From: Okamejei kenojei
Taxonomy: Eukaryota
NCBI GenBank assembly: GCA_035221665.1
Contig: CM069147.1
Span: 25,358,001-25,422,000 of the forward strand
Length of the DNA stretch: 64,000 nucleotides
Direction: 5' to 3'
Shown here: positions 15,117 through 57,811 of the stretch, piece by piece
How the letters are laid out: each line of letters opens with the position of its first letter
Position numbering within the stretch: the stretch's first letter is position 1
Notes under the pieces: model-generated
Databases searched by the model: none
The model's input: the letters and a program-made list of their open reading frames with translations, nothing else
Told to the model about the DNA's origin: nothing
Made by a program: the position numbers and the translations under genes

Positions 15117-15168
15117 ATGATGACACGTGTCTTACTGCAATTGATTGTTCTTCACGTCAGCTATGCCG
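15117..15168 (+). CDS. VJ-C1 Ig-superfamily receptor, exon 1 (signal peptide MMTRVLLQLIVLHVSYA)
   Basis: Hydrophobic leader; phase-1 donor G|gtatat; 159-bp intron to the V exon. Confidence 0.85.
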
Positions 15169-15327
15169 GTATATTTCACTCTTACTATAGACATCCGACC
15201 GAAACTTAATTATCAATTTATAAGTTTGCTGACCCTTTATTTATTTTTTCCTCGTTACGCGCAATTTTCAATTAATTTGGTCATTACCTCGGTTTAACCC
15301 TAAATTTGATTTTTCGTTTCCCGACAG

Positions 15328-15639
15328 CTGGTGCCAATGGTCCGTTGGACGTAACACAAGTTCCAGAAGCTGCTTTGATGCGGGGTGACTCGGCAGTGCT
15401 TTACTGCATTTATCCAATCTTCTCAGACAACAGGCCGTTCAAAGTGCATTGGTGGAGAGATGGGGATAATAGATTCCTGGATGAAAGTGCAGATAAAAGA
15501 ATCCAGTTTTATTTCCTGAGACGGGGAAGCGCTGTCATGCGGCTGGGGGACGTAACAGCGAAGGACGCTGGGCTCTATTTTTGTAGCTTGACACGTACCA
15601 AAGTTGTTAACGGGACTGGTACAAAGCTGGTAGTTTACG
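15328..15639 (+). CDS. Exon 2: germline-joined VJ-type Ig V domain
   Basis: Acceptor ttcccgacag; B-strand Cys (VLYC), C-strand Trp (VHWW), DAGLYFC, J-like G strand NGTGTKLVV; phase-1 donor G|gtgagt. Confidence 0.95.
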
Positions 15640-16650
15640 GTGAGTTTCGGGGAGAGGGGAAGGCCAGATCGGTTAACTTCACCAACTCAAAGCGATAAGC
15701 TCAATCACGTTGAAGAAAGTGCGCGTTGTTCATCATCTGTGTCCTTTGAAATAATATGATCTGTGTGATGGGTTAGATAGTGTTTTTGATGCAATTACCA
15801 AATAATCCCAATAGACTGATTGAGAGAGTAAATGACGCTTTCCACATCTTCTGCTTGACAGAATTATAAAACCTTTCGCGTATATTTTACAATTGCTTCA
15901 ACGCAGAGGGAATGGTGTTACTGAAACCGACGATACACGGTACAGGTAGTTGAGATTGAAAATATGTAGGGTTCCGAATGTGGTACTGATCAAGGAGATT
16001 ATTTAATTGATTTCTTTGGACCTGTCATCTTTTTTTTAATCGAAATTGTAAGGAATTACAGAATCATAGAATCATACAACTCGCCCGTTCTACCCACGTC
16101 GCCTCTGCCGACCGTGCTACTTGTGTATGTTGATGCTGTTTGCCTGTATTAGGCCCATATCCTTCTATAACTCTTCTGCGTAATTACCGGTCTAACGCAA
16201 TTTAAATGTTATTATTGTACTGCACCCTCTCCGGTGGCAGATGTTCCAGGTGTGCAAACCTTCCTCTTTTACATTTTCCACTTTTACTTAAACACCGTGC
16301 CTCATAGTGCGTGTTTCTATTATTCTGGGAAAGAAAACTCCGCCCGTGTGGCCCCGATATTTAAAAAATAACATTTTACAAGGTTACCCCTATGTCTCCT
16401 ATATTCTATGGAGAATAAACCATGCATTAGTCTCGTTTTTTATTCATCATCTGTGTCTCGTTATAACCAGGCCCCTCTATTTCAGTCAACATTCTGGTGA
16501 ACTTCATGTGCACTTGCTCAATTGGTACCATGTTAATCCGTAGTATAAATGTGGTCACATTTCTGATTGTCCCGGATGCTACTTGAAATTATACAGGAGC
16601 CGTGAAACGAGTCAATCATTGAGGGATAAAGATCTGTATTGTTACATTTA

Positions 16651-17739: not shown

Positions 17740-18042
17740 ACCCCCCAACTCCTCTGAGTTTGACCACCATGCTGCCGGAGAACACATCGGTTACTCTGAT
17801 TCTCGTTTGTAAAACAGCAACGTTCTTTCCTCTTGATCTGAATATTACTTGGTACAAAAATGGGTCAGATATTATACAGAACATTGAGCCGAACAAAACG
17901 CAGACAACAGCAGGACTGTACGAAGCTTGGAGCTGCCTGACCGAAACAGACCATGTGGAGAGCGGGACCGTTTATACCTGCCAGGTGTCTCATATTTCTC
18001 TTCCGAATCCAACCAATATCAGTTATACATTCTACAGTCGAG
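17740..18042 (+). CDS. Exon 3: C1-set Ig domain
   Basis: Acceptor attttccag; LVC, FFPLDLNITW and YTCQVSH C1 motifs; five N-x-S/T sequons; phase-1 donor G|gtaaga. Confidence 0.95.
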
Positions 18043-18451
18043 GTAAGAATAACGATACATTTTCGATGCATTTTGGCCACATACCCATGATTATCTCAGG
18101 AAAGGTGTGGTTAATAAACTATATTGTCCGTTTAGCACATGTATAACCGTTGACATGTAGTGTACCACAACAATGGGCGATGTTGGGACAAACGTCCATA
18201 CTTGTATGTGTCTCATGAACGTTATTACAACCTGTTCCATCATGCATTATGGTCCGGGTCAAACCATAAATGAAGCATCAGATCATCACAAACGAAACAA
18301 ACTAATGCCTAAAATATACTGCGAAGATTTTCGCTGGCAATCGATTGATTATGAAAGTATATTTTGGTGCCAAAAGTCCACGCTATGGTAAGATCTGGAG
18401 TAATTGGACTTACATTTTCTGAGAGACGGGGCCTACATGCATTTGGGGAGG

Positions 18452-18676: not shown

Positions 18677-20715
18677 ATGCATTTGGAGAGGCGTGGACTG
18701 ATCGGGGATAGTCAGATTTTCTTCGTGCGTGGGAATTCGCGTCTTACGAATTTGAATACGGGGTTTGAAGCGGTGACCATGAACATTGACGAGGACAGTG
18801 CGGTGTAATGCCTACTTAGACTTTAGCATGGCATTTGATAAGGTTCTGGTTGACTAGTCTGAAGGGTTAGTTCGTATTGGATCCAGGGCGAGCTTGTCAA
18901 CTGGATACGGAATTCCCTTGAAAATGGGAAATATAAATATAGTGATGGTAGAGGATTGATTTTATGACTAAATGTCTCTGACGAGTGCTATGCCCGAGGG
19001 ATCGGTGGTGGGTCCACTGTCTGTTTTCTTTCATATTAACGATTTGGATGTGAGTGCAAGGTTAGTTTGTGGATAGCACAAACAATTGTGGTTTAGTGGA
19101 CTGTGAAGAGTTTTATCAAAAATTATAACGGGATCTTAGTCAAGCGGGCGAATGGGCTGAGGAATGATAAATGCCGTTTAATACAGTGTCGATTTTTTTG
19201 TAAGACAAAATAGGACAGACATGCAGGTAGACTGGGAAAATCAGGTTGGTACTGGACCCCAAGAAAGGGACTTTGTCGAGTATTATTTGACAAGCTTGTA
19301 TTGGAGCCTACCAGGGAGAAGGCAATTCTGGATTTAGTGTCATGTAATGAACCGGATTTGATAAAGGACCTCGAGGTTAATGGGCCATTAGGAGAGAGTG
19401 ATCATAACATGGTTAGGTTTAATCTACAATTGGAGAGGGAGAAGAGTAGATCGGAGGTGTCAGTGTTGCAGTTGAATAAAGGGGACTATGGGCCCATGAG
19501 GGAGGAGCTGGCCAAAGGTGATTGGAAAGATACACTAGCGTGGATGACAGTGGAAAAAAAATGGCAGGTGTTTCTAGGAATATTACAGAAGGTGCAGGAT
19601 CAGTTCATTCCTAGGAGGAAGAAAGATTCCAAGGGGAGAAACGGACGACCATGGCTGACAAGGGACGTCAGGAACAGCATAAAAATTAAAGTGAAGAAGT
19701 ACAACGTAGCAAAGATGAGCGGGAAACAAGAGGATTGGGTAATATTTAAAGAGCAACAGAAGATAACCAAATAGACAATACGGGGAGAAAAGATGAGGTA
19801 CCAAGGTAAGCTAGCCAAGAATATAATGCAGGAAAGTAAAAGCTTCTTTAAGTATGTGAAGAGGAAAAAATTAGTTAAGACCAAAGTTGGACCCTTGAAG
19901 ACCGGAAGAGGTGAATTTATTATGGGGAATAAGAAAATGGCAGATGAGTTAAACTGGAACTTTGGATCTGTCTTCACTAAGGAGGCCGTGTTGGCATGTT
20001 GGCCTTTATAACAAGATGAATCGAATATAGGAGCAAAGAGGTCCTTCTGCAGTTGTACATAACCCTACTGAGACCACACTGGAGTATTGTGTGCACTTTT
20101 GGTCCCCTAATTTGAGAAAGGACATTCTTGCTATTGAGGGAGTGCAGCGTAGGTTTACTAGGTTAATTCCCGGGATGGCGGGACTGTCATATGCTGGGAG
20201 GATGGAGCAACTGGGCTTGTACACTCTGGAGTTTAGAAGGATGAGAGGATATCTCACTGAAACTTATAAGATTGTTAAGGGCTTGGATCGAGGATGTAAC
20301 TAGTAGAGTGGATAAGGGAGAACCTGTGGATGTGTTATATCTGGACTTTCAGAAGGCTTTCGACAAGGTCCCACATAAGAGGTTAGCACTCAAACTTAAA
20401 GCACACAATATTGGGGGTTCAGTGTTGATGTGTATAGAGAACTGGCTGGCAGACAGGAAGCAGAGAGTAGGAGTAAACGGGTCATTTTCAGAATGGAAGG
20501 CAGTGACTAGTGGGGTACTGCAAGGCTCAGTGCTGGGATCCCAGCTATTTACAATATATATTAATGATCTGGATGAGGGAATTGAATGCAACATCTCCAA
20601 GTTTGTGGATGACACGAAGCTGGGGGGCAGTGTTAGCTGTAAGGAGGATGCAAGGAGGCTGTAAGGTGACTTGGATAGGTTGGGTGAGTGGGCAAATGCA
20701 TGGCAAATGCAGTAT
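18677..20715 (+). mobile_element. Mosaic of CR1 ORF2 fragments; the last piece continues at 25984
   Basis: ORFs 19301-19774, 19793-20011, 20091-20303 and 20272-20664 have CR1 EN/RT motifs in non-collinear order. Confidence 0.88.
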
Positions 20716-23700
20716 AATAGTAAGATTAAACGAGAACTTACCAGTTCGAAGTTTGATCGTTATTTTATGAGGAGTAACGATGAGGGATTACGTGAAGAAG
20801 CCCCGCCTGGCGCTAGAAAGGCATACTTCAAAGCAACGGCATGCAAAACACAGAACACAATAGCCGGAGTAAGATAGTAAGGCTCATCATAGATTTAGAA
20901 CTACCAGATGATCATTTATTTTATGAGGGTGGGGAGTGGAGGGCATGTAATCCCTCATCGTTACTCCTCATAAAATAACGATCAAACTTCGAACTGGTAA
21001 GTTCTTGTTTAATCTTACTATTTTACTTCGGAGTCACGTGAGTGACTACGTGAAGATTTTGAAGCTTCTGTGTTTTCCATGTCGTAGAATTCTTCCATAC
21101 GACAGTCCGGCTAGGTCAACACATACATGAGTAAAAACCTTTTACCAGACCAGTTTTAGTTCTTTCCATAAATCTTTTAATGATAAACGAACATATATTA
21201 ACCCCCTTTTTACATCTGGGGAAACCATTACAAAGTGATAAAAGATATAAATGATAACATAATCGATAATATCAATCGATAGTGAAACAAAGCAGGTGAT
21301 TATAGTGAACCCAACACCGCGTGTCCAAAGCCTGTCATTGTGTGAACAGGTTTATTGTAGAACTTTGAAAAAGTTGCTTCTTTACACCACCCTGTGGTTT
21401 CTAAAATGTGTTCGAGTGGTACGTCCTGTAACTTCGCCGTGGACGTAGCTGCTGCCCTGGCGGAGTGAGATTTGAACACATCAGTGTCTACTCCTGCTAA
21501 AAGTAACACCTGTTTTAACCACCTTGAAATTGTTTGCACTGAAGCTTTTGTGTGTGGTTTCTTATGCGTAATCATTAATGTTTTTTCATCACCTTGAAGA
21601 TTTTTAGTAACTTTTATATATTGATTCAAATGTTTAACTACACACAACGTTGGATCAATAGGGTAAGCTTGAAACATTACCTTTGCTCCAGTTCTCCCTG
21701 GTCTGCTTTGTTTGATCAGATCGTAAACATAAAACACAATGTTATCTGCAGCCACATGCATACAGTCTAAACGTAGCATTTGTAATGTTTGCACCCTTTG
21801 AGCTGAAACCAATGCCATTAACATTACTAATTTAAATGTTAACTTTTCCAATGATAAAACTTCGATTGGAGTCCATTGCCTAAGTAAAGTAAGTACAATG
21901 CTGACATCCCAAATTTCTGTATATCTTATAACCATATAACCATATAACCATATAACAATTACAGCACGGAAACAGGCCCTCTCGGCCCTTCCAGTCCGTG
22001 CCGACCATTTGTTTTCCCCTAGTCCCATCTACCTGCACTCAGACCATACCCCTCCATTCCCTTCACGTCCATATACCTATCCACTTTACTCTTAAATGTT
22101 AAAATTGATCCTGCCTCCACCACTTCTGCTGGAAGCTCATTCCACACAGCCACCACCCTCTGAGTAAAGAAGTTCCCCCTCACGTTACCCCAAAACTTCT
22201 GTCCCTTAATTCTCATGTCATGCCCTCTTGTTTGAATCTTCCCTACCCTATCTTGGTTTGGGTGGATTTTTGTTAAAGATTCCTTTCATAAATCTGGATA
22301 TAAATGGATGTGATCCAATTGATTTCTGGTCAGAGATTTGTCCTAAATAAGATGATAAGGCACGACGTGCACTATTAATGGCACTATTACTTAAGTGCTG
22401 TTCAAAATGCAAGTCGGCAAGGAACTCCAATATGTTTGCAATGATCACAGTATGATAGGATATATTTGATTGTCTACAAAAATTTTCCCATTTTTTATAT
22501 GTGTCATATATTGTCTCTGAGTGCTATCTCGCCATGATGCACTATATAATAACCATAGTTCTATCCGACAATCCAAGCTCTTGTAGTGGTCTGGTCAAAA
22601 CCTGCAGATTAACAAATTCATATAAGCATGTAATGGATGAATTTCTTTGGTTACCGGTTTTATTAATAAATCACTGCTGCTAGGAATTGACATATATGGC
22701 TCTTTAATCATGTTTAACATCAATGGGAACCATGGTTGTGTCGGCCAATTTGGAATCACCAATAATCCTGTGGCAGAATCTTGTTCTATTTTCTTCAGAC
22801 ATTGCTGAACCAGAGCAAATGGCGGAAAAGCATAAAAGAACATATTCCCCCAATGTAGTGAAAAAGCATCTACTGCTACTGCATCTGGATCTGGTTCCCA
22901 AGACACATATTTAGGCAATTGATGATTTAATCTTGATGCAAACAGATCAATGTCTGGTAACCCATATTGAATCACAATTTTACTGAAAATTACTGGGTTC
23001 AACATCCATTCTGTGTTGTCTTTAAACATCCTTGATCTATTGTCTGCCACCACATTGTCTTTACCTGGGATATAATTTGCCGAAATCCAAATTTGGTGCT
23101 TAATACACCACTGCCATATCTGATTGACCAGACAATCACATGATACCGATCTAACTCCACCCATGTGATTAATATATGCAACAGCTGTTTTATTGTCTAA
23201 TTGTATCAGTACATGCAGATTCTTTTTTTGTAGAACAATAGGCTTTTAACCCATAAAACGCCCCCAATAATTCTAAATAGTTAATACCATATGTTTGGAG
23301 AAACATTTCCTCTTGGACAGTCCATCTGCCCCCACAGCTGGTAAATGAATCTGTCGCCCCCCCATCCGAGAGCACTAGCATCTGTTTGTAAAATTACTTC
23401 AGGCTGTTGTATCAGAATGGTTTTAGCAGCTTGTGGGACATTTTCAATCCACCATTGCAATTCCAATAAAGCTTATTTTGTTAATTGCATAGGCCTATCA
23501 AAATGGCCTGCTCTCTTTTTTAGAGCTCTTATTTTGTCCCTTTGAAGGTTTTGGTAATGTAATGGACCAAATTCTACTGCAGGAAATGCTGCTACTAATT
23601 TACCAATAACCTTTGCTACTTCCCGGATGGAGGGATAAGGTTTGTGAATGAGACCCCTACAGGTCATTAAAATATCATCAATCCTATCTGTTGGCAAAGT

Positions 23701-25983
23701 TACTAACATAGTAACTGAGTTAATCACAAACCCCAAATAGTGAATTGACTGTGCTGGCTGCAGCTGGGACTTAATTGGATGAATCAAGAAACCTAACTTC
23801 TCAAATAAAGTTTTAGTTGCTGAAACTGATTTTTCAGCTGATTCCTGATTACTATTGATGATTAAAATGTCATCCAGATAAGCCATAATGATGTGCTTTT
23901 GTGCTCTTAATTGTGCTAAAAGCTGGTTTCAACAGCTTTGTAAAGAGCCTGGGAGCTGAACTTAACCCATTTGGTAAAGCTTTGAATTGCCACAGCTGTC
24001 CCAGCCAATTAAATTTTAAATACCTTCGAAAGAACTGGTGTATCGGTACTGAATAGTACGCATCCTTTAAATCAATTGTAGCCATATAACAACCTGCTGA
24101 TATCAAATGTCTTGTAGTGTTGAATGTTTCCATCTTAAAATGTTTATACTCGACAAATGTATTATAGTTTGTAAGGTCCAGAATAATCCTGCAACCACCA
24201 TCTTTTTTACTTCTTGGAAATATATTTGACACAAACTGATGTTTATGTTCAACAGTTTTTTCAATAACACCTTTTTTAAACAATTTGTCAATTTCCACAT
24301 TAATTTCTGCCTCTTCAATTGCAGAAAACATGAAACCATAAGCAGGTTTATTTTGTACTGGAGCGTTAACACCTTCTTTAAATGTTATAGTAGCTCCTGA
24401 AACTGTTTGTAAAATAAACCGATCAGATGTGATGGCAAGCCATTCATCATAAAACATTTGTAATCTCCCTCCAACTGGAGATTTTGTCCCCAGTTTCTTT
24501 AAGAATTTGTACCTCTCCATATGAACGTGGTGGTCTCCTTCTCCCCGTATACGGGTGAACATTAGGCTGTGTCGGATGGTAATATTTTCTTATCATATTC
24601 CTGCCTCTGTTTCCAAAATCAAATCCCCTTCTTGATGAAAAATACCTTTTTTGTCCAAAAACGAAAGGTCTCATGTGGCTAATACATTTAGCCTCTTCAT
24701 CCATTTCTCTTATTTGCTCAGGCAGGTTCTCTCCAAATAGATAACCAGGAGCTTGAACACCACTTGATCGATACAGACCTGCAAACCTTGGATGACATAT
24801 GGGCCGAATCGCAATTTTCCTCATACTATTAATTTCATAGAAGGAATTGCACAATAAGCCCAAAGTATCTTTTTGGATTTTAACCATTTCCGACCCTTCC
24901 ATTTGCCTTCCAAAAGCAGTAATGGCAGCTGAAATCTGTTTGAGGATTCTTTGAAATCTTATTTCTTGTCCGCTCATGCCTGGAGTCATAGGCGTCCATA
25001 TAAACGGATTAACCGTAGGTACCTTCAATGAGTGCAATTTTCCGGTGTTTTATATAATTCTGCTGTTTCAACCATCACAGAATCTTGAAGTTGGTGAGAT
25101 ACCATATAATTAATACTGGCAGCTAGGTTTTCTTCCATAGCCTCACCACTTCCTTCAGGTATAGCAAAATCTTTTGCCATATCAGGCACATCTGGCCCCT
25201 TCTTTTTTATTCGTGGTGTGCACTCATAATCCACATCACCAGTTGCAGGGTCTGACTTTTGCAGCCCTGATACACTTGGAATTATATCCAATGAGACTTC
25301 CTCTGCCCTTAATCCTGGGTCTGGAGTTTCAAATTCCCAATTTGGCACATAGCCATATTCTGGATATTCAAACCCCTCAGGGTCATTTTGGGAAACTTCT
25401 GGGTACTGTGACCCTTGTCTCATTATATTTTGGAGTACTTTCTGCATATGTTCCATTTTAAGCCATGTAGCTTTATTATCCGGAGGACTTTCATTATCAG
25501 AGTCATTATCAGAAACCACGGGCCTCACGGATTTCTTTTTACTTTTTCTAGGAACATTTTCCTCCGTGGTTTGCTGATTCACCCGTAGTCTCACTAACGG
25601 GTGAATCAGCGGCCACCGGTATCGGAACCGGATCCGCACTAAACTCTTGTCCCAACTCTTTAGCTTCACCCCGGGACGATCTTTTTACCCGCAAAATTTT
25701 CCTTTGAGACTTCTCCATTTTTCTTTTTTATTATCTGGCTAAATCAGTATGCCAGCGTGACTCTAATTTTAAATTTTACTTTCACTTTTGCTGGTTCTAC
25801 CAGCATAACGTCTTTTTTAGAACATCCCCTCTTTTCCTTGCAGTTACCTGCGGGTCCGTTCCGGCCGCTTGTGAGGAGCTGCGCTCTGCAGCTCTTGCTT
25901 CTGCCGTCAGCGTCGACGTAATGCCGTTCTAGCGCCAGGCGGGGCTTGTTCACGTAGTCACTCACGTGACTCCGAAGTAAAAT
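20716..25983 (-). mobile_element. Near full-length DIRS1-type retrotransposon (subfamily A): gag, RT, RNase H, methyltransferase-like domain, tyrosine recombinase; disrupted
   Basis: Gag-like ORFs 25669-24447; RT 24562-23473 (DLKDAY, LPNGLSSAPR, YLDD); RH (TDAS..GWG, INYLEL); MT 23164-22595 (DLFAS, YAFPPF); YR 22448-21300 (SAQR, HSAR, FSKFY). Terminal structure: 20716-20793 pairs with 20944-21022, 21020-21054 pairs with 25949-25983, and ITR 20789-20824 pairs with about 25921-25956. Confidence 0.96.
21928..22248 (-). mobile_element. CR1 3' fragment inserted in the DIRS recombinase gene
   Basis: (ATAACCAT)n tail; 6-bp TSD TATCTT at 21922-21927 and 22249-22254; removing it restores PPKPRYTEIWDV. 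Same subfamily as 41876-42390. Confidence 0.92.

Positions 25984-34642: not shown

Positions 34643-34644
<2 letters not shown>

Positions 34645-34685
<41 letters not shown>
34645..34685. repeat. (CA)n microsatellite
   Basis: About 20 CA units; the outer DIRS copy has only a short CACACA at about 31135. Confidence 0.95.
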
Positions 34686-34945
34686 CTTAAGGCCGACAGG
34701 ATATGCTTATAGGTTTACCTAGGTTTCAGCTCCTCTTGGTGTGCTTTGTTTGGTAAATTCATAAACATATATGATAATGCAATCTGTATCCACATGCAAT
34801 TATAACGTAACATTTGCAATGTTTGCACTCTTATATTGATACTAAAGTCATCAGCATTATTATTTTCAATGTTAACTTTTTTGAATCATTGATAGAGTTA
34901 GAGTCCATTGCCTAAGGCAATTCAGGATTATTTATCTCCCGACAT

Positions 34946-35104
34946 NNNNNNNNNNNNNNNNNNNNNNNNNNNNNNNNNNNNNNNNNNNNNNNNNNNNNNN
35001 NNNNNNNNNNNNNNNNNNNNNNNNNNNNNNNNNNNNNNNNNNNNNNNNNNNNNNNNNNNNNNNNNNNNNNNNNNNNNNNNNNNNNNNNNNNNNNNNNNNN
35101 NNNN
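34946..35104. other. Assembly gap (159 N)
   Basis: Run of N, at the position of a (TA)n tract in the paralogous copy (about 31414-31427). Confidence 1.
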
Positions 35105-35514
35105 CCCTTTCCATATCGGGATATTATGAATGCACCTGATAACTTCTTGGTTAGTATATTGTCCGTTAATAGGACGGTAACATTCTGAGCCCTATTATTG
35201 GCTCTATCAATTAGATGCTCAGAAAAATGCATTCCACAAGGAACTCACATATATCTAATATGATAAAATAACTTTACTGTATACACAGACTTCCAATTTC
35301 TTATAACAAAATATTGTTTTTTAAACTTATTTCTGCAAATTGCAGGTATAACACTTCTTTTATACATAATTATTTTATTGTTATGTTGTTATATTAGTTA
35401 AACATTCATAGAGTTCTTTGACCATCAGCTGTTGTAATGGTCTGGTCAACCTGCAGATAGTCAAATTCATATTTTCATGTCATGGATGCCTTTGTACAAC
35501 AATAAATTACTGCA

Positions 35515-41780: not shown

Positions 41781-41875
41781 TCACAAGGTGAAGAGTATAT
41801 AACTTTTATCCCTGCGCATTCTTGGACATTCCACAAAATGTCTTGTTGTACCGACACAGCCATAAATCATTACTT

Positions 41876-42390: not shown

Positions 42391-42715
42391 AATAGAGAGA
42401 CTATAAATACTTGTTATGCTCTGGGACATATCCGAGCTGCATTCTTATATACCGTTTCGAATTGGTTGCAGGCAAATATTTGGTTCTTCTGCACCTTAAC
42501 AATGCTTTGATTATATGTTATTTACACACAACTAGCATGAGACAACAATGAAAAAAACAGCAACTGCGTTTATGGGCAATGTTCCTGCATGTTTATTCCC
42601 CGTCGACGTCAACTCGATATAAACAAAGACTGAATTATGCTTTTGAAATAATAGCCTGTCCTATTATTTAACACTCTAAATATACTACAACTGACCATTA
42701 TTTTATTGTTTGCAG

Positions 42716-42814
42716 TTTCTTTACCCAATAATCCATTTCATAACTGGATTTTTGGTTGCATAGGAGCAGGATTGATACCTCTCATAATCATTATTTTCAT
42801 TGTGAAACGAAAAG
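42716..42814 (+). CDS. Exon 4: stalk and transmembrane helix (VSLPNNPFHNWIFGCIGAGLIPLIIIIFIVKRK)
   Basis: Branch-like CTGAC and acceptor ttttattgtttgcag; phase 1-1; 20-residue hydrophobic run followed by a KRK stop-transfer; donor G|gtaaga. Confidence 0.9.
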
Positions 42815-43467
42815 GTAAGACTCGGAAACTTTTTGATCTCGAGATTGTATTGAAATTAACCAATCGGAATTCAGCAATACTTTAGTTAGAAATGCAGCTC
42901 GTAAACAGGTGATTCGGCACCGAACAGCAACCCCAGCATAGTCACACTATCGTACACACACTTGGGAGAATTTACAATTATACCAATCCATTTAATCTAC
43001 AAACCTGTACTTCTTTGGAAAGTGGGAGGACACCGGAGATCCCGGAGAACATAATATTGGAGAGTTATATTGGATCGGACACTGCATGCGGTTAGCTGGT
43101 CTGTGGTACATACGCTCCATCTCACTGAGTGCATCGCTTATCGGAAGCAAACTTTTTAGTTAGTCACCGCTTTGTTCATGAAGGATAGATGCTTGGTGTT
43201 TTGGGGCTGGTTGTGGGATAAGGGGTTGAGTCTGAGAAAATGGGTCGGTGACGCAGAAACTCATTCTGTGATTGAATGTGCTCCGACAACTCGAAGTGGA
43301 CTAATATCCTGTAGGTTTTTAATAATTGGTACCGTGAAATTATTTTTGCAACATACATGTATACAAACTCAAAAGTTTAAAAAAAATGTATATGCTGCTA
43401 GATTTACTGGCTACTACGATTCTTTGTATGGATCAAGAGATTTTTATTCTAAATTACCTCACTGTAG

Positions 43468-43511
43468 GGACGTGCAGAATATCGAAAGGACGTGCAGAGC
43501 ATATAACGAAG
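43468..43511 (+). CDS. Exon 5: juxtamembrane cytoplasmic (GTCRISKGRAEHITK)
   Basis: Acceptor cctcactgtag; donor AAG|gtaaga; supplies the phase 1 to 0 switch needed to keep exon 6 open. Confidence 0.78.
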
Positions 43512-44452
43512 GTAAGATATGTATAATACTGCAGATAGGTCCAAACAGCACTCGGACATGCTCCCAATTATTACCTTCGTTTGGATAATTACGAGATTCT
43601 ACAAGTCAACTTGCGTGATGAAATTGGAGCAAAATGAAATTCCTCAGTAATGCCTTCAAATTCAAACACAGCTGCTGTAGGCCCATTTGTGCACTTGATG
43701 TTTTTTAATGGAAGCATGGCGATAGGAACGTAAACTTAGGAGAAGGAATAAGCGATATGGTCCTTCGACCTTTCTTGGTCGTTCAATAAGTTCATGGCTC
43801 ATCCTGCAAATTTAGTGTCCCGCTCCTACTTTCTCCCAATGTCCCTTGATCCCTGAGACTTGGTTCGCACTGTATCTCTATCACATAACAATGTTCACAT
43901 CATTTTGAATATATCTCATAATTTTGATTCGTGTGATTGTGAAATAGATGTTCTTCTCTCCTGGAGAGGAACGTTGACCCCATTACAGTTTGAAATAGCT
44001 TTTCCCGTATTATTTTACAATGATTCCTGGTACTGGTTTTCCCATCAATGGGGAACAACATAACTCCATTATATCTTTCCCATACTGTGGATTTGTAAAC
44101 AATTGTCTGGGCTGCCTTCTCATGCTTCCAAATTTTTGGGAAATTACCTTAATTTAACCCAATGCATACGTTAGTCTTGACACAGTCTATCAGTCTGTTG
44201 AAATCTCATTGTAACACCATCATTGGAAGATCTCTTCACAGTCAAATTGACCAAATGTGTGCACACCTCTCAAGGAGAGTAGTCGTCAAGGTCTATGCAA
44301 GTCGAGACAATCCTTTTCCGATAGCTTTTTTAAAATCGGAATTTGGCATGCTGCAGGAATGTACGATGTTTAATTATGTCTATTGTAGTAAATTTATCGA
44401 AAATATTTTGATTCGTAGGAAAGAATTTTAACAACATACTGTTTTTTTTTAG

Positions 44453-44563
44453 ACTAAGCATTGGGAACCCAATGAAGGAATTGTTTACAGTACTTTCCTT
44501 ATCGCTGGTGCAAAGCGATCTGCCGAAGATAAATACACAGAACCGAGCACAATATATGCCCAG
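44453..44563 (+). CDS. Exon 6: 111-bp cytoplasmic exon (TKHWEPNEGIVYSTFLIAGAKRSAEDKYTEPSTIYAQ)
   Basis: Poly-T acceptor; phase 0-0; donor CAG|gtatga; ITIM-like IVYSTF and TIYAQ; paralogous to exon 7. Confidence 0.85.
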
Positions 44564-47500
44564 GTATGAGCAACATGCGCCATTTCATTGAGCAGCAGTT
44601 GGATCACAGTTGAATTTAATTGAAACATTTATCTGAGTGCTTCGTTCGTAGCTTTGTCTAATTACAATTAACAAATTGCAGTCTCAAAAGGGGGGAAATC
44701 TAATCGGCAGAATTGATAGCCTTTGCTTTAATTAAAAAACAATTATTTTTCGTGAATAAGAAAGGCTATAATCCACAATGCACCAGTAACTGAAATTCAG
44801 GTGGTGATAAGCGGGCACAATCTTGAATCTCTCCCATGCTTCAGGTAAAGGTGCTGTCAAATTGTTTCGTGTAAATGCTTGGGGGATTTAGACTCAACGG
44901 CGAGGGAGGACCTCCAACCAATTTTAAGTCAGGAACGTGTATGACTCGGAGAGGAACCTACACGTGGCAGTGATCCCATTCAAACTTTGTTCTCTATGCA
45001 TATAGATCAAAAGATTGCTATGCGCTTATGTAATGGATGGGATGAATAGCTGCAGTTTACGTAGTAAATAGTGCACTGGTGAAGGAAATAACTGCTTATG
45101 GTTGGCAAGCAAATGCAGTGATTTGACCTGAATGGTGTCAGGTGTCTGGAATTGGAACATTTGCTGGAACTGCACTCAGCTTGCCAAATGAAAGTCATTC
45201 TATCACATGCCCAAGTTATGCTTTGACGATGAGAAAAGGTTTCGGAGTCAGTAGTTGGGTAGCTTTTCGCAGGATACGCAGCCGACTCTTGTAGCTCTAC
45301 TATTTATGTGGCTAATCCTCGTGCATTTGTGATCTATGATGAGTACTAAAGAGGTGATGTTGGAGGATGCAGTGATCGCAATGCCACTGAAGTTCAGGGT
45401 AATCGGTTGGACTCCATTTTTTGTGGTGTGACCCAACACCTTTAGTCTATCAGGTCGTGAAATTGCCAACAGGGATGGACTATTTGAATTTCTGAGAATT
45501 TGCAAGTGGAACGGAATATGGTGCAAACATTCAGTGAACACCCCAGTTTTGATTTAAGATGGACAGATGGTCATTTATGAGCAATTTAACATGGTTGCGC
45601 CTCCGATACAGCCTAGAATATTGCCTGTGGTGATGGTAATCCTCTCGGATAGTTCATCTGGAGCAATAACAACCAGTGCACCACATGACTCCAATCATAA
45701 AGAACCCAATGATACTGTAATTGGAATATCCCTGTGATAGAAATAGTGGAGAGAACATTCACCTGATTGATCTTTGCGCTGACTGGTTTTGCTACATGGG
45801 GAGATGTTATGAACATATATTGTAGAGAGAATAAAGGCTGTTCACAAAAACCTGCAATATTTTACAGGCCGATAAATAGATGTTGATATTTATCCTGATT
45901 TCGTTGCTTAGAATCAGGCTTTGCAATCTCATAATGAGGATATAGCATCATTGCAGAGATAGCATTATGAACCAAGACTGATCTCTGTAACATGAAGTGG
46001 CAATTGACAATTCAGACACAATGAACAATCTGACAAGATATGATGTCATTATTATATTAGGGAAGCAATGCATTTGAGGTTATTGCATGGTAAGTTTTTT
46101 TATATACAGTATAGTGTGTTAGATATCTATAATTCGATGTCAGGGGACGTGCTTGAATCAGATACAATAAGCGAGTTCGGTATTCCGACTGTGCATGCCC
46201 AGGTCATAGGTCACTAGCTATAAATCAGTCTTGGCAACCATGTTGCTGCATTGTGTGCAGGCTTGCGTCTCGTTCGTAGTCGGGTTGGGGTCGGCTCTCC
46301 ATCGCTGTGGCCCGGGTGCTGTTGGGGCATCCCTCCCCGGTGTCCTGTCCCTGTCCGGAGATGTCCGGGTGGCCCTGGCCTGGCGGGGCGGCCCCGGACT
46401 TGCCCCAGACAGGGCCGTGCTGGTTCCAGCTCGGCTCTGCCTACCCAACCGGATTGGTCCCAGCAACCCTCCACCTCCACCCCCACCCCCTCCCCTCAGT
46501 CCGACGCTGAGATCATGCTGAAGATGGGCAGCCGTCGGCCCTGCTTGAATCCAGGCGACTCAGAACCGCTGCTGCTGGAGTCGTCCCGGTCAGTGTCCCA
46601 TTGATCCGGACGTCTCATGTGGTTGGGGGGGGGGGGGGGAGGTCCTAGGACCGCCCAGTCTCAACCCCTCCCCAGGACCACCTGGTCTCCACCCCCCACC
46701 ATCTGGTCTCCAGCCCCGTCTCCCACTGAAAAATCGGACCAAATGTATACTCACTGTATCTATAGCGCAGAGATCTATTTACTTTTATAGCTTACAACCT
46801 TTGACAAATCCCATGATTCCCTGCGTTTTTCGGAATACCGAACTCACTTATTGCTACATTTATACAGGCTTTTATACGGATACATCCACGGGCAAGCCAT
46901 ATGATCCAAAACTGGCCATAAGTATAGATGGGCAAAAGGTCGGTATTATCACCGACTCTCTGACTGCAAAGCAACACGAGAAAGATTAGTGGTAATATTT
47001 TAACACTACAGTAGAGACACTAAAAGGCACTCCTGAGGCTATTGTTTATTTTTTTACGTTTGGGGCGTTAGCCTGAGTGCGGGCGCTGATATTGCTTTGC
47101 TCGCACTGACTGGGGGGGGGGGGGGGGGGGGGGGAGGGGGCGGGGGTTAGATGATTTAATGGAGATTTAATTGATAGCATATTTCTCCACACGTGCGCAT
47201 TGCCTCATGTAGGTCGATCATTTCACAAATTACGGAAGTTTCGGGGGGGGGAAAAAGCCTGGTTCAGGGCCTAGAGGGTCAAACATTCTTTACTTCAAAG
47301 CTTGTGCTGTCACACCTAAAATTAATCTAAATATCACCGTAATATTTGACTTCACTCAGAAATAACATCAGGTATCGAGTCGGGTTCCGTTTACTGCAAA
47401 ATTCTCAAGACCCCTCAGTGACAGTGGTCGAATGTTTTGCAAAGCCCGGGCATCCTAGCTGAAGAGGACTTGTGGGAGGTGAAGTACAGCATGGTGACTG

Positions 47501-48816
47501 AAAAGATTGAGAAAGTTGCTGTGGTTACCATGCAATCTTTCTGAGTTTGGTAGTCTTATGAATGTTAGAATCGTGGGTTTCATTTTGTAGGCAATGTAAA
47601 TTGGGGACCGTTTGCGAGGTAGTTAAAACTGAAAATAACCTTTCATACGCCATCCTCGCTAATAGTTGTAGTGTAGCTCTTTAAGTGGAAGTGTTTGAAG
47701 ACTGGTCTCTTGTAGCATGTAATAGGGAGCCCCGCGTATTTGTTTAATACAGGGTTCCCTTATATGAAGGGGATGGTCCCAATTATTACATCTGCAATGT
47801 CCCTTCTCTTCCTGGCTAGGGGGTGTGAGCCTGTAATTTTGTATCCAAATTGCACCTACACAATTTTGAATCTCCAGCAAGCCAGTCCAGATGCATCCAC
47901 TAATAACTAAAATCTATCATAGCATCTGGCAGTTTAATTTCGTTCATTGAGTTTCATTGTGTTTCACATGAAATGAAAGTCAGCTGGAAAATCAGTTAAG
48001 TTGGCAATACAAAGTAAAGTCAAATTTAGAATGGAAATTAGTGTTTCAATGGGCCACTCTGTGACAGTAAGAATAAAACACGTGTCCAATTGCAGCCTGG
48101 TTACCATGCACCATAGTTTGATGCACTAAACGGTGAATCAACAAGTAAGGATATTCGGTATTGGAAAATGTTTGAACTGATAAATTAGAGAAACATCAGA
48201 AAATGGTAAATAGAAAATGTTTTTCACTCACTTGCATTTTTCAATGACTCAGCAGAAAAGCTTAAAGAACGAAAAACATCCCAAGTGAGCATTTAATAAA
48301 ATGCAGACAGAAGGCTTGCAAATGAGTCTGTGGCCAAATGAATAAAATATAACACATAACGGGGACCAGTGGAAGGAGCTGTCCCCATTCAATTGAACCA
48401 TAGCTAGTTGAATAATAGACACAAGAGACAACATTTACTTTCAATCGGATCAACTTTGGGAGATTGTGCAGATGAGGCCTTCAGCAACTATTTCCATGCA
48501 GGAACTTTAAAAACAAATTGAATTGCCCTAGTTATCAGTATATTTGATTTGGCTAGTCTTATGCATTAGTCTTATTTGGCTAATGCACAGTCTTAGGTTT
48601 AGCCAATGATCACTGTACAATCCAGAACAGTGATAAATGAATCATTTGTTTTTTTACAGAAGGAAAAATAATATTAATATAATAACATTTTTCATATTAT
48701 TAAAGGCATTTGGTATTTTGCTAACATTTACAATGTCCGTTACTGGCGGCAGTGGTGTATTTTTGGAAATATGTTGATTGATGTAATAATTATAATAACT
48801 TGCTGATAACTTTCAG

Positions 48817-48927
48817 ACAATGCAATCCGAATGTGATCCAAAGTTAACTTATACTACTCTAAACATCGCTGGTCTAGATACATCTATTAAATCCAGATAC
48901 ATTGAAGAAGGCATGATATATGCCCAG
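48817..48927 (+). CDS. Exon 7: 111-bp cytoplasmic exon (TMQSECDPKLTYTTLNIAGLDTSIKSRYIEEGMIYAQ)
   Basis: Acceptor actttcag; phase 0-0; consensus donor CAG|gtaagt; canonical ITIM LTYTTL. Confidence 0.85.
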
Positions 48928-49014
48928 GTAAGTGTAATAAGAGCCAATTAATGGAACAACTATGAATCAAAGATGAATGTATGTTAACCAATTATCTTTG
49001 TAAGGTGTTTGTCG

Positions 49015-51890
49015 TTACATAGACAATAGGTGCAGGAGTAGGCCATTCGGTCCTTCGAGCCAGCACCACCATTCAATGTGATCAAGGCTGGTTATCCACA
49101 ATCAACACCCCGTTCCTGCCTTCTCCCCATATCCCTGGATTTTGCTAGTCCTAAGAGCTCTATCTAACTATTTTTTGAATGCATCCAGTGAATCGGCCAC
49201 CATTACCTTCTGAGTCAGAAAATTCCACATATTCACAGCCCTCTGGGTGAAAATTTTTTCCTCATCTCAGTTCTAAATGGTCTACCCCTTATTCCTAAAC
49301 TGTGGCCTCTGGTTCTGGACTCTCCCAACATCGGGAACATGTTTCCTGCATCTAGCGTGTCCAATCCCTTAATAATTTTACATGTTTCTATAAGATATCC
49401 TCTCATCCTTCTAAATTCAAATGAATACAAGCCCAGTCGCTCCAGTCCCGCCATCCTGGGAATTAACCTCATGAACCTAAGCTGCACTCCCTCAATAGCA
49501 AGAATGTCCTTCATCAAATTAGGTGACCAAAACTGCACACAATACTCCAGGTGTGGTCTCATCTATACAACTGCAGAAGGACCTATTTGCTCCTATACTC
49601 AACTCCTCTCGTTATGATGGCCAACAGGCCATTAACTTTCTTTGTTGCTTGCTGTACTTGCATGCTTACTTTCAGTGACTGATGTGCAAGGACACCCAGG
49701 TCTCGTTGTCCTGCCCCTTTTCCTAACCTGACAGGTTTCAGATAATAATCTGCTGTCCTGTTCTTGCCACCAGTGGATAATCTCATATTTATCCACATTA
49801 TGCTGCATTTGCCATGCACCTGCCCACTCACCCAACCTGTCCAAGTCACTCTGCAACCTCTTCACAGTTCACATTGCAACCCAGATATGTGTCATCTGCA
49901 AATTTGCTAATGTTACTTTTAATTCCTCCATCTAAATCATTAATATGTATTTAAAATAGCTGCAGTCACAGCACCAAGCCGTGCGGCTGCCCATTAGTCA
50001 CTGCTTGCCATTCTGAAAGGGACCCGTTAATCCCCTACGATTTGTTTCCTGTCTGCCAACCAATTTTCTATCCATGTCAATACCCTACACCCAATACCAT
50101 GTGTTCTAATTTTGACCACTAATCTCCTGTGTGGGACATTATCAAAGGCTTCCTGAAAGTCCAGGTACACTATATCCACTGGCTCTCCCTTGATCATTTT
50201 ACTTGTTACATCCTCAAATAATTCCAGAAGATTAGTCAAGCATGATTTCTTCTTCATAAATCCTTGCTGACTTGACTGATCCTGTTACTGCTATCCAAGT
50301 GCGTCGCAATTACATATTTAGTAATCGCCTCCAGCATATTCCCTCACCCAATGATGTCAGGCTAACTGGTCTATAATTCCCTGCTTTTTCTCTCCCTCTT
50401 TTCTGAAAATGTGGGATAATATTGGCTCCACTCCAATGCACAGGAACTGATCCAGAATCTATAGAACATTGGAAAATTATCACCAATGCTTTCTAGAGGC
50501 ACCTCCTTGCGTACCCTGGGATGCAGACCATCATGCCCTGGGGATTTATCAGCCTTCAGTCCCATTAGTCTACCCAACACCATTTCCGGACTGATGTGAA
50601 TTTCCTTCTGTTCCTCTGTCACCCTAGGTCCTCTGTCCCCTAGTATACATGGGAGATTGTTTTTGTCTTCCTTAGTGAAGACAGAACCAAAGTAACTGTT
50701 CAATTCGTCTGCCATTTTTGTTCCCATAATAAATTCACCTGTTTCTGTCTTCAAGGGACCCACATTTGTCTTAAATAATTTTTTCCTCTTCACATACCTA
50801 AACATTTTTTTTGTTGGCCTCCTTTATATTCTTGGCTAGCTTACCTTCGTACTTATCTTTTCTCTCAATATTACCTTTTTAGTTACCTTCTCTTGATCTT
50901 TAAAAGTTTCCCAATCCTTTGGTCTCCCGCTCATCTTTGCCATGTTATATATCTTCTCTTTTATTTTTATACTGTCCTTGACTTCCCTTGTCAACCACAT
51001 TTGCCTCTTACTCCCCTTAGAGTCTTTCTGCCTCTTTGGAATTAAATTATCTTGCATTTTCTGGATTATTCCCAGAAGTACCTGCCATTGGTGTTCACTC
51101 ATCATATTATGATCACTAACTCCTAATGGGTCCTTTACCTTGAGTTCCCTTATCAAATCCGGTTCATTACACAACATGATATCTAGAATTGCCTTCTCCC
51201 TGGTAGGCTCCAGTACAAGCTGCTCTAAGAATCTATCTCGGAGGCACTGTACAAACTCCATTTCTTGGGGTCCAGTACCAACCTGATTTCCCAAGTCTAC
51301 CTGCATGTTGAAATCTCCCATAACGACCGTAATATTACCTTTGTTACATGCCAATCTTAACTCATGATGTAACTTGCACCAGGAAACTATTTGGGGGCAT
51401 GTAGATAACTCCCATTAGGGTCTTTTTACCCTTACAATTTATCAGTTCTATCCACAATGACTGCATCTTCTGATTCTATCTCACCTCTCGCAAGGGACTG
51501 AATTTAATCCTTACCAACATTGCTTCTGGAACCCCCCTGCCCACCTGTTTGTCTTTTCGATAGGACATATACTCCTGAATATTCAGTTCCCAGCTCTGAT
51601 CCTCTTGCAGCCATGTCTCTGTAATTCACACAACATCATACTTACCAATTTCTAACTGAGCCTCAAGCTCATCCACTTTATTTCTTATATTTCGCGCATT
51701 CATAAATAACACTTTTAATTCAGTATTCAACTCCCCTCTCACGTCGGTTCCTATTTCACCTGACCTTGCTCTTTTACCCCTTCTTGAAATTTCCGTCCCA
51801 TTAATTTGGGTGTCTTTCGTAACTTCTCCTGTACACTTTTCCCCTTTAACTCCACCATTATACTTCTAATTTGTCACCCCCCACCTCCCC
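49015..51890 (-). mobile_element. CR1 LINE, most of ORF2 (EN+RT), decayed
   Basis: ORFs 50836-51354 (MGDFN, SDHN), 50371-50805, 50027-50257 and 49233-49865; CR1 3' UTR. Confidence 0.92.
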
Positions 51891-55400: not shown

Positions 55401-56956
55401 CCGATTCAGCGGCTGGCTCTCACATCCCCCTGTTGGCGTTGTTCACTGCCGGCACATATGTGCTTGAGTCTGTTCTATTGACATCTTTAGAGCCCGGAGT
55501 CATCTTGACCTTTTGCTCTTCCCTCCTCAGAGAGGGTGATTCATAGGCAACTCTAACAGGTGCTGCCGCAGGCCATAGGATACAAATACTGATACGAACC
55601 CATTGGCCTTAATCCAATAAAATATTTTACTGGGATGCAACTTTATTGTCAGGAAAGGTACCACTGACATGTGCCCTTCATCCCTTTGGGTATGCCCCAC
55701 GGCCATACCTTGAGACTCAGTGTGAGCAGGATACTGATCCATCTTGGTCTCTGCCTCCGAGAAGGAGACCTTTGCAGCACTGTGTACAACAGTTGCAGTA
55801 TTTAGGATAGTCGTTCCAACGCACTATCCAGCCCCGGTGAGGAATTCATCCCCCGACTCTATGAGCCTTGCTCTCTAGCCCCGGTGGGCGAGCAGATATG
55901 TGTGAATTTGAGCAACCCTGTCCCAGGCCTTGCTGGCGCCGCCTTTCATTAAGGCCGGCGCTTTTTGACATGACACAGCCCTGCATCAGGCGCTGCTGGC
56001 ACGGCTCTCCCGTAGGCTGGCACTTCACACATGAAGCAGCCCTGTCAGGCACTGCTGGCATGGCTCTCCCGTAGGCCGGTAATGTCAGAAATGAAACAGC
56101 CCTGTATCAGGTGCTGCTGGCACAGCTCTCCTGTAGGCCGGCACTTTCATACATGAAGCAGCCCTGTCAGGCGCTGCTGGCGCAGCCTGTCCCATAGGCC
56201 CGCGCTATTGCTGCGTAAGCTCACTAAATCAACATTTTCAGTGTACAGCTTTACCTGTGAAGGGTAAAAATAATTCATAGCAACCTGTGCTTAAACAATT
56301 ATAACATTGTCAGAACATATAATATCTTTGTACTTTGCCTTAGCTTTTACTTAAGGAAAAAACACTATAAAATACATTATTTTTATTATAAGGAGAAACC
56401 CTTTATAGCCCGGCACACCCGAGTCCAAATAGGGCTGAATGAGTCCCACTAATTTCTTGACTGGAGACCAACGTCTGTGAGCCACTGACCCCACTGTCAT
56501 GGCTCCAGCGTTGCTTCCTTTCCGTTCCAACGGCATCCCACAGGCTGGGAGCTGCTGACCCCCCTGTCAGCGACTCTGCTTAAATTTCCTGCCGTTTGTA
56601 CGGCATTCCTGCAGGCTGGGAGCCCCTGACTTAACTGTCAGCGGCTCCTTCTCTCGCAACCCGATCAATTTTGCCGGTTTATCCGCATTTGCGGTCGGAC
56701 TGGAATTTCCCCACAGTCCATGACCGGCAACTTGTCGGGCTGCGAAACTGGCAGGAAAAACCTATGTAAAAACAGGCTATCGCCTAAAAAACCCTGGTAA
56801 GTAAAAAACCAAACTTACCTTTTAAGTTTAACTTACCACCGGCAGGAGCTCTGTCCTGCCAGACTGGTGCTTGCGCCAATGCGGCTGACGTAATGGTGCG
56901 CATGCGGCCTGGCATGCCTTCTTCACGGGATCACTCACGTGACTCCGAAGTAAAAT
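52438..56956 (-). mobile_element. Decayed DIRS (subfamily B) with both termini
   Basis: AATAGTAAGATT start, hairpin/ICR at 52438-52770, YR remnant (ORF 52940-53215, HSTRAAATS...AAGW), end CTCCGAAGTAAAAT; splits an older Rex/Babar-like fragment. Confidence 0.9.
55975..56200. repeat. Tandem repeat of about 60 bp, 4 copies, inside the DIRS
   Basis: Units of CAGCCCTG(YA)TCAGGCGCTGCTGGCACRGCTCTCCCGTAGGCCGG...ATGAAG. Confidence 0.85.
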
Positions 56957-57730
56957 TGGGATTGAGCAGACTACTTCAAGAACCTTATGGTTGTAGGAAA
57001 GTGCCTGTTCCTGGACCTGGCGGCGTGGGGTTTTAGGCCTCTGCGCTTCCTACAGGATGGTAGAGGCGTGAGATGGCATGTCCCTTATGGTTGGGAGCCT
57101 GGACGATAGATGCCACCATCTTGAGGAAATGCCTAATGTTGATGCTTTAAATGGTGAGGATGCTGGCGACGGTGAAGTACAGAGAGCTGGTTGATGACCA
57201 GTATGGATAAGATCGGACAAATAGCATGCTTTCTTTCTCGTATATTCAATTATTCTCGACACGAAGCACCAAGAAGATAAGTTATACAGTAGTAGACGGC
57301 TGAAAGCTAAACACTCATAATTTCTTAGTCACAAAATGCTAAATTAATTTAAAGAAGAAATGAATTAAACAATATGAAAACAAGCTGATCAAGGATAATT
57401 TACCAATACATTGTTCATGAGATGAGATAGGAGATTTATTTTCAATTCAGTGTTACGGAATGCACTGTCTTGAAATGCGCAGATTGTCGACTGAAACACT
57501 TATTTTAAACTTGACAAATTATATCATAGATGAAAGTAAACGTACAATTCAGTTGGAAATGATCAGTGGCAAAGACCAATGTGGCTGTCTTATATCTTGT
57601 ATTCCATTGGACGAGTATGTGTATCAATTAAAATGTTGCATTTATTTTGGTGGCGTAGTTACTGGGAGACAGCTGTCAAAGCAAAAGCTGAAATGAATTG
57701 ACGACGATGTTATGAAACACTATTTTACAG

Positions 57731-57811
57731 ACAATACATGGTCGATCTGAACGCATGGCTGAAGAAATGGATATCAATACAGGGAACATCAACCAAATTG
57801 TAAAATCGTAA
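57731..57811 (+). CDS. Exon 8: probable terminal coding exon (TIHGRSERMAEEMDINTGNINQIVKS*)
   Basis: Acceptor tattttacag; phase 0; start ACAATACAT resembles the exon 7 start ACAATGCAA; followed by non-repeat AT-rich UTR-like DNA and a poly(A) signal. Confidence 0.6.
   Translation, partial: TIHGRSERMAEEMDINTGNINQIVKS

Follow-up and report, generated by a model that had tools for sequence, protein, structure and literature searches.

Organisation of the gene

The window analysed here is a 64,000-nucleotide (nt) stretch of the genome of the skate Okamejei kenojei (assembly GCA_035221665.1, contig CM069147.1, positions 25,358,001 to 25,422,000 of the forward strand; all positions below are those of the window). 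Between 15117 and 57811, its forward strand contains a predicted gene for a type I membrane receptor with one V domain, one C1 domain, a transmembrane (TM) segment and a long tyrosine-bearing tail. An initial annotation had proposed eight phase-compatible GT-AG exons encoding an open frame of 370 amino acids (aa), and this model was recovered with its coordinates, boundaries and phases. Exon e1 (15117–15168, 52 nt) carries the start codon(s) and the signal peptide MMTRVLLQLIVLHVSYA and ends at a phase-1 GT donor. It is followed by e2 (15328–15639, 312 nt), which encodes a V-set domain with a germline-joined J-like strand, YFCSLTRTKVVNGTGTKLVV, and by e3 (17740–18042, 303 nt), which encodes a C1-set domain. 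Intron 3 then extends over 24.7 kb (18043–42715) to e4 (42716–42814, 99 nt), which encodes a short stalk and the uncharged TM segment as SLPNNPFHNWIFGCIGAGLIPLIIIIFIVKRK. The cytoplasmic part begins with e5 (43468–43511, 44 nt; basic juxtamembrane segment GTCRISKGRAEHITK) and continues with two tyrosine exons of 111 nt each and phase 0-0, e6 (44453–44563) and e7 (48817–48927), before e8 (57731–57811, 81 nt) supplies the C-terminus TIHGRSERMAEEMDINTGNINQIVKS and a TAA stop codon. ATTAAA/AATAAA signals lie downstream of this stop at 57951–59600. The exon lengths (52+312+303+99+44+111+111+81 = 1113 nt) give 370 aa with no internal stop, all internal exon boundaries are AG...GT, and the phases (1,1,1,1,0,0,0) form the usual series of immunoglobulin (Ig)-superfamily receptors.

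Seven of the eight exons showed homology to shark or ray proteins. In tblastn searches with 14 proteins of the family described below, e2, e3, e4, e6, e7 and e8 were matched collinearly on the forward strand, and the leader in e1 resembled those of the full-length orthologues P0001 and P0154. Under a crude splice scoring, the e1 donor was weak (0.3), the splice sites of e4 were good and the e7 donor was strong (8.9). The exception to the homology evidence was e5, the least certain exon, for which three 44-nt AG/GT candidates preserve the reading frame, the initial annotation not specifying which was intended. The candidate at 43468–43511 was chosen because it had the best splice score (9.8 versus at most 7.4 for other frame-restoring AG/GT exons) and the closest, albeit weak, likeness to the juxtamembrane segments of P0001, P0154 and P0155; on the same two grounds, the candidates at 43130–43173 and 43535–43578 were rejected. 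A six-frame motif scan of the 64-kb window detected no second V, J or C1 signature, and the tblastn searches detected no further Ig or TM exon in intron 3 or elsewhere in the window. The gene looks intact and was, as it seems, correctly pieced together in the initial annotation.

The V-C1 ectodomain

Pfam assigned e2 to the V-set (E = 1.3e-8) and e3 to the C1-set (E = 3.8e-12), confirming the proposed order of a V domain and J-like strand within a single exon followed by a C1-set domain. Cys26 and Cys85, the WW pair, DAGLYFC and NGTGTKLVV all lie inside e2, and no heptamer/nonamer site resembling a recombination signal sequence (RSS) was found within 14.5–18.5 kb. Because the V domain and J-like strand share one exon and no RSS lies nearby, the gene cannot rearrange, which supports the earlier view that it encodes a cartilaginous-fish membrane receptor of non-rearranging VJ-C1 type. 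The C1 exon shows the motif series LVCKTATFFP...ITWYKNG...YTCQVSH and five N-glycosylation sequons, and the hallmark residues of both domains are all retained. The stalk between the C1 domain and the TM segment comprises 11 aa, compared with 9–13 aa in the full-length orthologues. A third cysteine in the C1 exon, Cys65 (17934–17936, EAWSCLTE), was present in the little skate and manta orthologues and absent from those of sharks and the chimaera; it may be unpaired or form an interchain bond.

The loops corresponding to complementarity-determining regions (CDRs) 1 and 2 (YPIFSDxRPxKVHWWRDG and FLxESxDxRIxFYFL) were conserved between the skate and shark orthologues. Judged from these alignments, such conservation fits recognition of a constant endogenous ligand better than diversification driven by pathogens. 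In the J-like strand, a conserved NGT sequon stands in place of the Phe/Trp of the FGXG motif of antigen receptors. A glycan at this site would sit on the V-pairing face used by Ig and T-cell receptor (TCR) chains; thus, a light-chain-like V-V dimer seems unlikely, although this is an inference only. The AlphaFold model of orthologue P0001 comprised a confidently predicted V and C1 ectodomain and a TM helix, with a disordered tail. The best Foldseek matches of this model were antibody light chains only (E about 1e-16, 21% identity), a level at which VJ-C1 families were not discriminated, and in the ESM Atlas the V exon retrieved only generic 'putative antigen receptor' V-set clusters and the disordered tail no usable match.

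Transmembrane segment and tyrosine tail

The TM segment, WIFGCIGAGLIPLIIIIFIV, contains no charged residue and shares 59% identity over 27 aa with the TM segment of P0001 (IFGCLGAGLI...). The tail of about 117 aa contains exactly six tyrosines, three in e6 and three in e7, so that both the uncharged TM segment and the tyrosine count of the initial annotation were confirmed. In e7, the tyrosines occur in LTYTTL, SRYIEE and MIYAQ. The first conforms to the immunoreceptor tyrosine-based inhibitory motif (ITIM), (S/I/V/L)xYxx(I/V/L), and, together with the uncharged TM segment, it gives the protein the sequence features of the ITIM-bearing inhibitory IgSF receptors. The tyrosine of MIYAQ(T) lies 23 residues past that of the ITIM. 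The same 23-residue spacing separates IVYSTF from TIYAQ(T) in e6, with DKYTEP between them. The counterparts of LTYTTL in the orthologues were LTYLTL, LKYVTL and LTYVTL. The description of the tail as inhibitory in type is borne out by this ITIM, the only canonical one around the six tyrosines.

Exons e6 and e7 are duplicates of each other, e6 being the more diverged, and their flanking introns align at about 65%–70% identity, no worse than the exons themselves. The single tail unit of the manta orthologue P0155 was 56% identical to e7 and 40% identical to e6; in tblastn, e7 matched P0002/P0155 at E = 3.7e-6. Since both boundaries of e6 are in phase 0, its omission from the transcript would keep the frame and give a manta-like protein of 333 aa. 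The most C-terminal exon, e8, scored highest with the C-terminus of manta P0155/P0002 (TIHGQNESQTEEINVN against TIHGRSERMAEEMDIN). Across the family alignment, the tail layout was conserved, with the consensus xxYAxLxL, about 16 residues, TxYAQTKQ, LTYAALxL, about 16 residues, and xEYAxx.

Reading through the donors of the two tyrosine exons would alter their final motifs. Past the e6 donor (44561–44569), the frame continues as TIYAQV and a stop, a canonical TxYxxV. Past the e7 donor (48925–48950), it continues as MIYAQVSVIRAN and a stop, resembling the true C-termini of the paralogues P0157/P0158 (VYAEVTVIKKERS). Whether these donors are spliced or read through would therefore determine which residue stands at +3 in the final tyrosine motif.

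Orthologues and the chondrichthyan family

An exhaustive HMMER search of 1.8 billion proteins with the V exon returned 226 matches at E <= 0.001. The best, P0001 from the shark Heptranchias perlo, is 368 aa long (60% identity, E = 1.9e-33). Database look-ups and two word-indexed searches showed that the gene belongs to a VJ-C1 family whose predicted proteins number in the dozens and come from at least 15 species of Chondrichthyes. The genera represented include Callorhinchus, Heptranchias, Heterodontus, Chiloscyllium, Hemiscyllium, Scyliorhinus, Mustelus, Carcharodon, Cetorhinus, Mobula, Hypanus, Hemitrygon, Pristis, Amblyraja and Leucoraja, and each species has several of the genes on a single contig of chromosome size. 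Among the matches to the family profile at E <= 1e-15, all 49 named ones were chondrichthyan, and no tetrapod protein reached that level.

The family is known only from automatic database predictions, whose names include SIRP-alpha-like, SIRP-beta-like, tapasin-related-like, Ig lambda-like, NCR3LG1-like, CD276 homolog, TCR-beta-like and H-2 class I-like, and several members are labelled 'tyrosine-protein phosphatase non-receptor type substrate 1-like'. Given this inconsistency, no named family is the clear best match. The literature searched contained no description of a chondrichthyan VJ-C1-TM family, although its coverage was incomplete and a prior description is still possible; a paper on the cartilaginous-fish MHC mentions VJ-C1 genes in general terms only (PMC10751288). 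The suggestion that the family might be uncharacterised is thus consistent with the literature, whereas its predicted proteins, some of them automatically named, are already public in considerable number.

Members such as XP_067853506 (Heptranchias, 'PTPNS1-like'), XP_072135201 (Mobula), P0156 and Callorhinchus A0A4W3GFD2 share the same exon-by-exon layout and the motifs WW[KR]xGE, NGTG[TS]xLxV, TWYKNG, VYTCxVSH, FGCxG (in the TM segment) and LTYxxL...xYAQ (in the tail). The window gene shows the complete series of leader, VJ exon, C1 exon, TM exon, short exon and tyrosine exons of the 111-nt type, the short exon having been placed by splice scoring. It differs in having two tail units, whereas the manta protein has one, and in the 24.7 kb intron before its TM exon. 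Its length of 370 aa is close to that of the full-length orthologues P0001 (368 aa), P0154 (349 aa) and P0155 (manta, 325 aa), which have the same layout. The closest model was P0156 of the little skate (Leucoraja erinacea), a 223-aa 'tapasin-related protein-like' sequence with 89% identity in the V domain and 96% identity in the C1 domain, in keeping with a close relationship between the two skates. This model starts at an internal Met, reads through the e3 donor into intron 3 and stops there. Its truncation fits the earlier comment on how readily the distal TM exon can be overlooked.

Separate V and C1 phylogenies recovered the same orthogroup, comprising proteins of the little skate, manta, two or three sharks and a chimaera together with the window gene. 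In both trees, the branching followed a species-tree-like order of Callorhinchus, sharks, manta, and little skate plus the window gene. Support for the orthogroup was 98 on V (seven rows) and 84–99 on C1, and the whole family formed a V clade with a support of 95 that included the window gene; the V tree was rooted on a turtle pIgR-like V domain and was inferred by a quick method from few columns. The distal TM exon e4 also scored highest with P0001, P0154 and P0155.

Comparison with known receptor families

Outside Chondrichthyes, the nearest V domains in the whole library were those of Xenopus NCR3 (P0055, E = 6e-10, 32%–35% identity) and of a Bombina protein, and in the V tree amphibian NCR3-type domains adjoined the chondrichthyan clade. 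In PDB, the V exon matched pIgR D1, human NKp30 (1.2e-3), TCR-alpha and amphioxus VJ-C2. The window gene shares with NKp30/NCR3, including the expanded NCR3 cluster of Xenopus, a germline-joined VJ domain and an NGT sequon in the J-like strand. However, NKp30 lacks a C1 domain, and its mammalian form has a charged TM segment that pairs with CD3-zeta/FcR-gamma and a short activating tail, in contrast to the C1 domain, uncharged TM segment and long tyrosine tail encoded here. 

The C1 exon behaved as a generic C1 domain in PDB, with matches to IgM, MHC-I alpha3, SIRP-alpha d2 (9.4e-11) and UrIg2 (6e-10). Like UrIg and UrIg2, the window gene combines a non-rearranging VJ domain with C1, is confined to cartilaginous fish and bears on models of how antigen receptors arose. 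UrIg2 has nevertheless been crystallised as an antibody-like V-C1-C2-C3 chain (PDB 9dmx; PMC12227049) and forms antibody-like homodimers, whereas the window gene has a single C domain, a TM segment and a signalling tail. The VJ-C1 ectodomain is also that of TCR and Ig light chains, but the window gene has no RSS, separate V/J segments, charged TM residues or membrane-proximal interchain cysteine, and possesses an inhibitory-type tail of its own. The MDIRs of the clearnose skate were ruled out as well, as their V domains are of the CD300/pIgR type without C1. In our reading, the window gene lacks, among the features tested, some that define each of SIRP, NKp30, TCR/Ig light chains and UrIg, and belongs to a chondrichthyan family of its own. 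A role as a pre-RAG ancestor of antigen receptors, to which the initial annotation had alluded, was not supported; non-rearranging VJ-C1 genes form several lineages, this family standing alongside UrIg, UrIg2, PRARP and SIRP.

Evaluation of the gene model and its alternatives

The explanation that we consider probable is that this is an intact skate gene for a type I membrane VJ-C1 receptor, with its TM segment and tail spliced across the 24.7 kb intron, and that it belongs to an old orthogroup extending from chimaeras to skates. The model is supported by the open frame, the splice sites, the Pfam domains, the homology to shark and ray proteins, the length of the orthologues, the concordant trees and the collinearity around the assembly gap described below. 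Several observations nonetheless weigh against this explanation. All junctions, including the splice from 18042 to 42716, are predictions; a search of public sequencing runs gave none containing the 5' exons, and three small runs under the same species label, probably of DNA, were aligned on 42700–48699 and gave contigs on repeats only and none on e4–e6, which is uninformative either way. P0156, which is the sole model annotated in a close relative, has no leader, TM segment or tail and reads into intron 3. Support for e5 comes from crude splice scoring, and e6 is conserved no better than its flanking introns and may not be used. In the tail, only one of the six tyrosines lies in a canonical ITIM; the two IYAQT motifs lack the V/I at +3 of the immunoreceptor tyrosine-based switch motif (ITSM), and IVYSTF is also off-consensus.

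Part of this evidence could instead reflect a mainly secreted V-C1 product, generated by read-through of the e3 donor with a stop after 34 extra codons and polyadenylation at 18113, the distal exons being rare or unused, as in the secreted form of Ig heavy chains. The little skate model ends in exactly such a read-through, a single AATAAA lies 71 nt past the e3 donor (18113–18118, forward strand) as a candidate intronic poly(A) signal, and the next exon is 24.7 kb away behind transposons. These include a long interspersed nuclear element (LINE) reverse transcriptase fragment at 19301–20664 on the forward strand and a DIRS-like element at 21300–25669 on the reverse strand, with reverse transcriptase, tyrosine recombinase and a methyltransferase-like open reading frame (ORF). 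However, P0156 is partial, with no leader and an internal Met, and might be an ab initio prediction. Intron 3 of the window encodes the same read-through peptide as P0156 for about 21 residues and then diverges, as expected of an intron. In e4, e7 and e8, the frame is still open, the splice sites are good and the sequence resembles that of the orthologues, which argues for their use, and the full-length manta and shark orthologues do have a TM segment and tail. We therefore regard secretion as the main outcome as unlikely.

Alternatively, e4–e8 might derive from another family member whose V and C1 exons were lost in an assembly gap, or tandem paralogues might have been falsely joined. The gap (N run, 34946–35104) is intronic and touches no exon, but it does lie between the two halves of the gene and its true size is not fixed by the assembly. 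It falls inside the second copy of a tandem duplication of about 3.5 kb in intron 3 (copy 1, 30220–33699; copy 2, 33762–37357; 82%–89% identity), which also contains an (AC)n microsatellite at about 34647–34685. Tandem repeat units are typical places for an assembler to break, and these repeats could conceal collapsed sequence. Both flanks of the gap, examined over 1 kb on each side, aligned with copy 1 in the same order and orientation, leaving about 29 nt of copy 1 unpartnered. Given this collinearity with the other repeat copy, a false join at the gap appears unlikely from the sequence, while extra repeat units hidden there are possible. The 5' and 3' halves independently scored best with the same orthogroup, the stalk and total length fit those of the orthologues with no exon missing, and the window contains no second V, C1 or TM exon and no upstream V-C1 gene on the same strand. 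Taken together, these observations make a chimera very improbable.

A further possibility is that the gene represents tetrapod SIRP-alpha in Chondrichthyes, as an orthologue or co-orthologue binding a CD47 homologue, and would thus be a known receptor under another name. In SIRP-alpha, too, a V domain bearing a J-like strand precedes C1, the TM segment is uncharged and the tail has two units, and many family members have been automatically named SIRP-alpha-like by NCBI. The SIRP-alpha tail runs ITYADL...TEYASI...LTYADL...SEYASV, in two units that each combine an ITIM with a second tyrosine about 23–26 residues later. The tail of the window gene has this layout and the 23-residue spacing, twice, but only LTYTTL is canonical and several motifs are off-consensus. 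Tails combining an ITIM with an ITSM-like motif also occur in Siglecs, CEACAM1 and PECAM1, and the layout could represent convergence on binding by the tandem SH2 domains of SHP. Besides the match of the C1 exon to SIRP-alpha d2, the family profile matched SIRP-alpha d1-d2 in PDB (4.7e-30). Ig chains and UrIg2 (2.3e-35) nevertheless scored equal to or above SIRP, at similar levels, and as these profile scores add up over several domains, SIRP, UrIg2 and Ig are not separable as the closest relative. 

The V domain is not specifically SIRP-like. Unlike NKp30, TCR-alpha and pIgR, SIRP d1 was not matched by the V exon in PDB at E <= 0.01, and the nearest non-chondrichthyan V domains were those of Xenopus NCR3, as noted above. 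SIRP-alpha moreover has two C1 domains (V-C1-C1), whereas the 64-kb window contains one C1 exon and the orthologues are also V-C1. Together with the lack of tetrapod proteins at E <= 1e-15 and the inconsistent names, these differences make orthology to SIRP-alpha very unlikely. The earlier suggestion of a SIRP/NCR3-related receptor holds in part, with regard to the NKp30-like V domain and the SIRP-like layout of the tail. A skate paralogue, P0041 of Amblyraja radiata (493 aa), combines V-C1-C1 with a tyrosine tail; a SIRP-type ectodomain thus occurs within the family too, and this paralogue would be a better candidate for a test of SIRP orthology than the window gene.

Finally, an unexpressed or decaying copy with exons open by chance would fit the lack of RNA support, the large transposon insertions in intron 3, the weak e1 donor and the divergence of e6, but is hardly credible for 1113 nt in eight exons without a stop or frameshift, with all V and C1 hallmark residues kept and with the C1 and V identities to the little skate orthologue given above.

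Possible mode of action and significance

Assuming the membrane form, the V domain would bind a conserved, probably endogenous, ligand on a cell surface. Src-family kinases might phosphorylate the tail tyrosines, whereupon the ITIM LTYTTL and the tyrosine 23 residues downstream could recruit the tandem SH2 domains of SHP-1/SHP-2. These phosphatases would then damp activating signals, as in SIRP-alpha, Siglecs and CEACAM1. The TM and tail exons would be reached by splicing over the transposon-filled 24.7 kb of intron 3, and the AATAAA past the C1 exon may permit a secreted V-C1 form as an alternative product. We infer this inhibitory mechanism for the window receptor by analogy, and a SIRP-alpha-like mode of action, likely recruiting SHP-1/2, is our reading of the tail. 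The orthogroup has been conserved for more than 400 million years, which implies a conserved ligand.

The window gene is best described as a further member of an uncharacterised family of non-rearranging VJ-C1 receptors of inhibitory type in Chondrichthyes, its exons being unusually dispersed. This family combines an NKp30-like V domain with a SIRP-alpha-like tail. More speculatively, and with considerable doubt on our part, the orthogroup might be ancient and seemingly single-copy in each sampled species, uniting a VJ domain of the NKp30 type and a C1 domain with a double tyrosine tail of the SIRP-alpha type; if its tail and ectodomain are homologous to those of SIRP and NKp30, the SIRP-type inhibitory module on a VJ-C1 ectodomain would date to the base of the jawed vertebrates rather than to tetrapods, and the gene might choose between secreted and membrane forms as Ig heavy chains do.

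Non-rearranging VJ-C1 genes (UrIg, SIRP, NKp30 and PRARP) are raw material for models of antigen-receptor origin. On the basis of its C1 domains, a connection of SIRP-alpha with antigen-receptor precursors has been argued (PMC2785349), while the origins of SIRP have been called unknown (PMC9652883) and the SIRP family has been dated to Tetrapoda (PMC13262535). A chondrichthyan-wide family with a SIRP-like tail provides a concrete gene set for testing whether inhibitory VJ-C1 receptors predate or parallel TCR/Ig. Annotation pipelines can truncate such genes where transposons have displaced the TM exon by tens of kilobases, and counts of 'secreted' versus 'inhibitory' members based on public models are therefore unreliable.

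Other features of the window

Upstream of the gene, a second gap of 149 N lies at 4594–4742. A retroelement ORF with an RVT_1 domain (E = 8.5e-39) was found at 1367–2200 on the reverse strand, and a decayed Tc1/mariner (Sleeping-Beauty-like) transposase at 6603–8187, also on the reverse strand, was recognisable from HTH_Tnp_Tc3_2, HTH_SB and DDE_3 over three ORFs. Within the distal part of the gene, an endonuclease-reverse transcriptase match occupies 50836–51354 on the reverse strand, next to an ORF at 50371–50805 without a Pfam match. High-copy short repeats at 42900–43099 and 46100–46900 were marked by hundreds of contigs from the three public runs stacking at 90%–95% identity.

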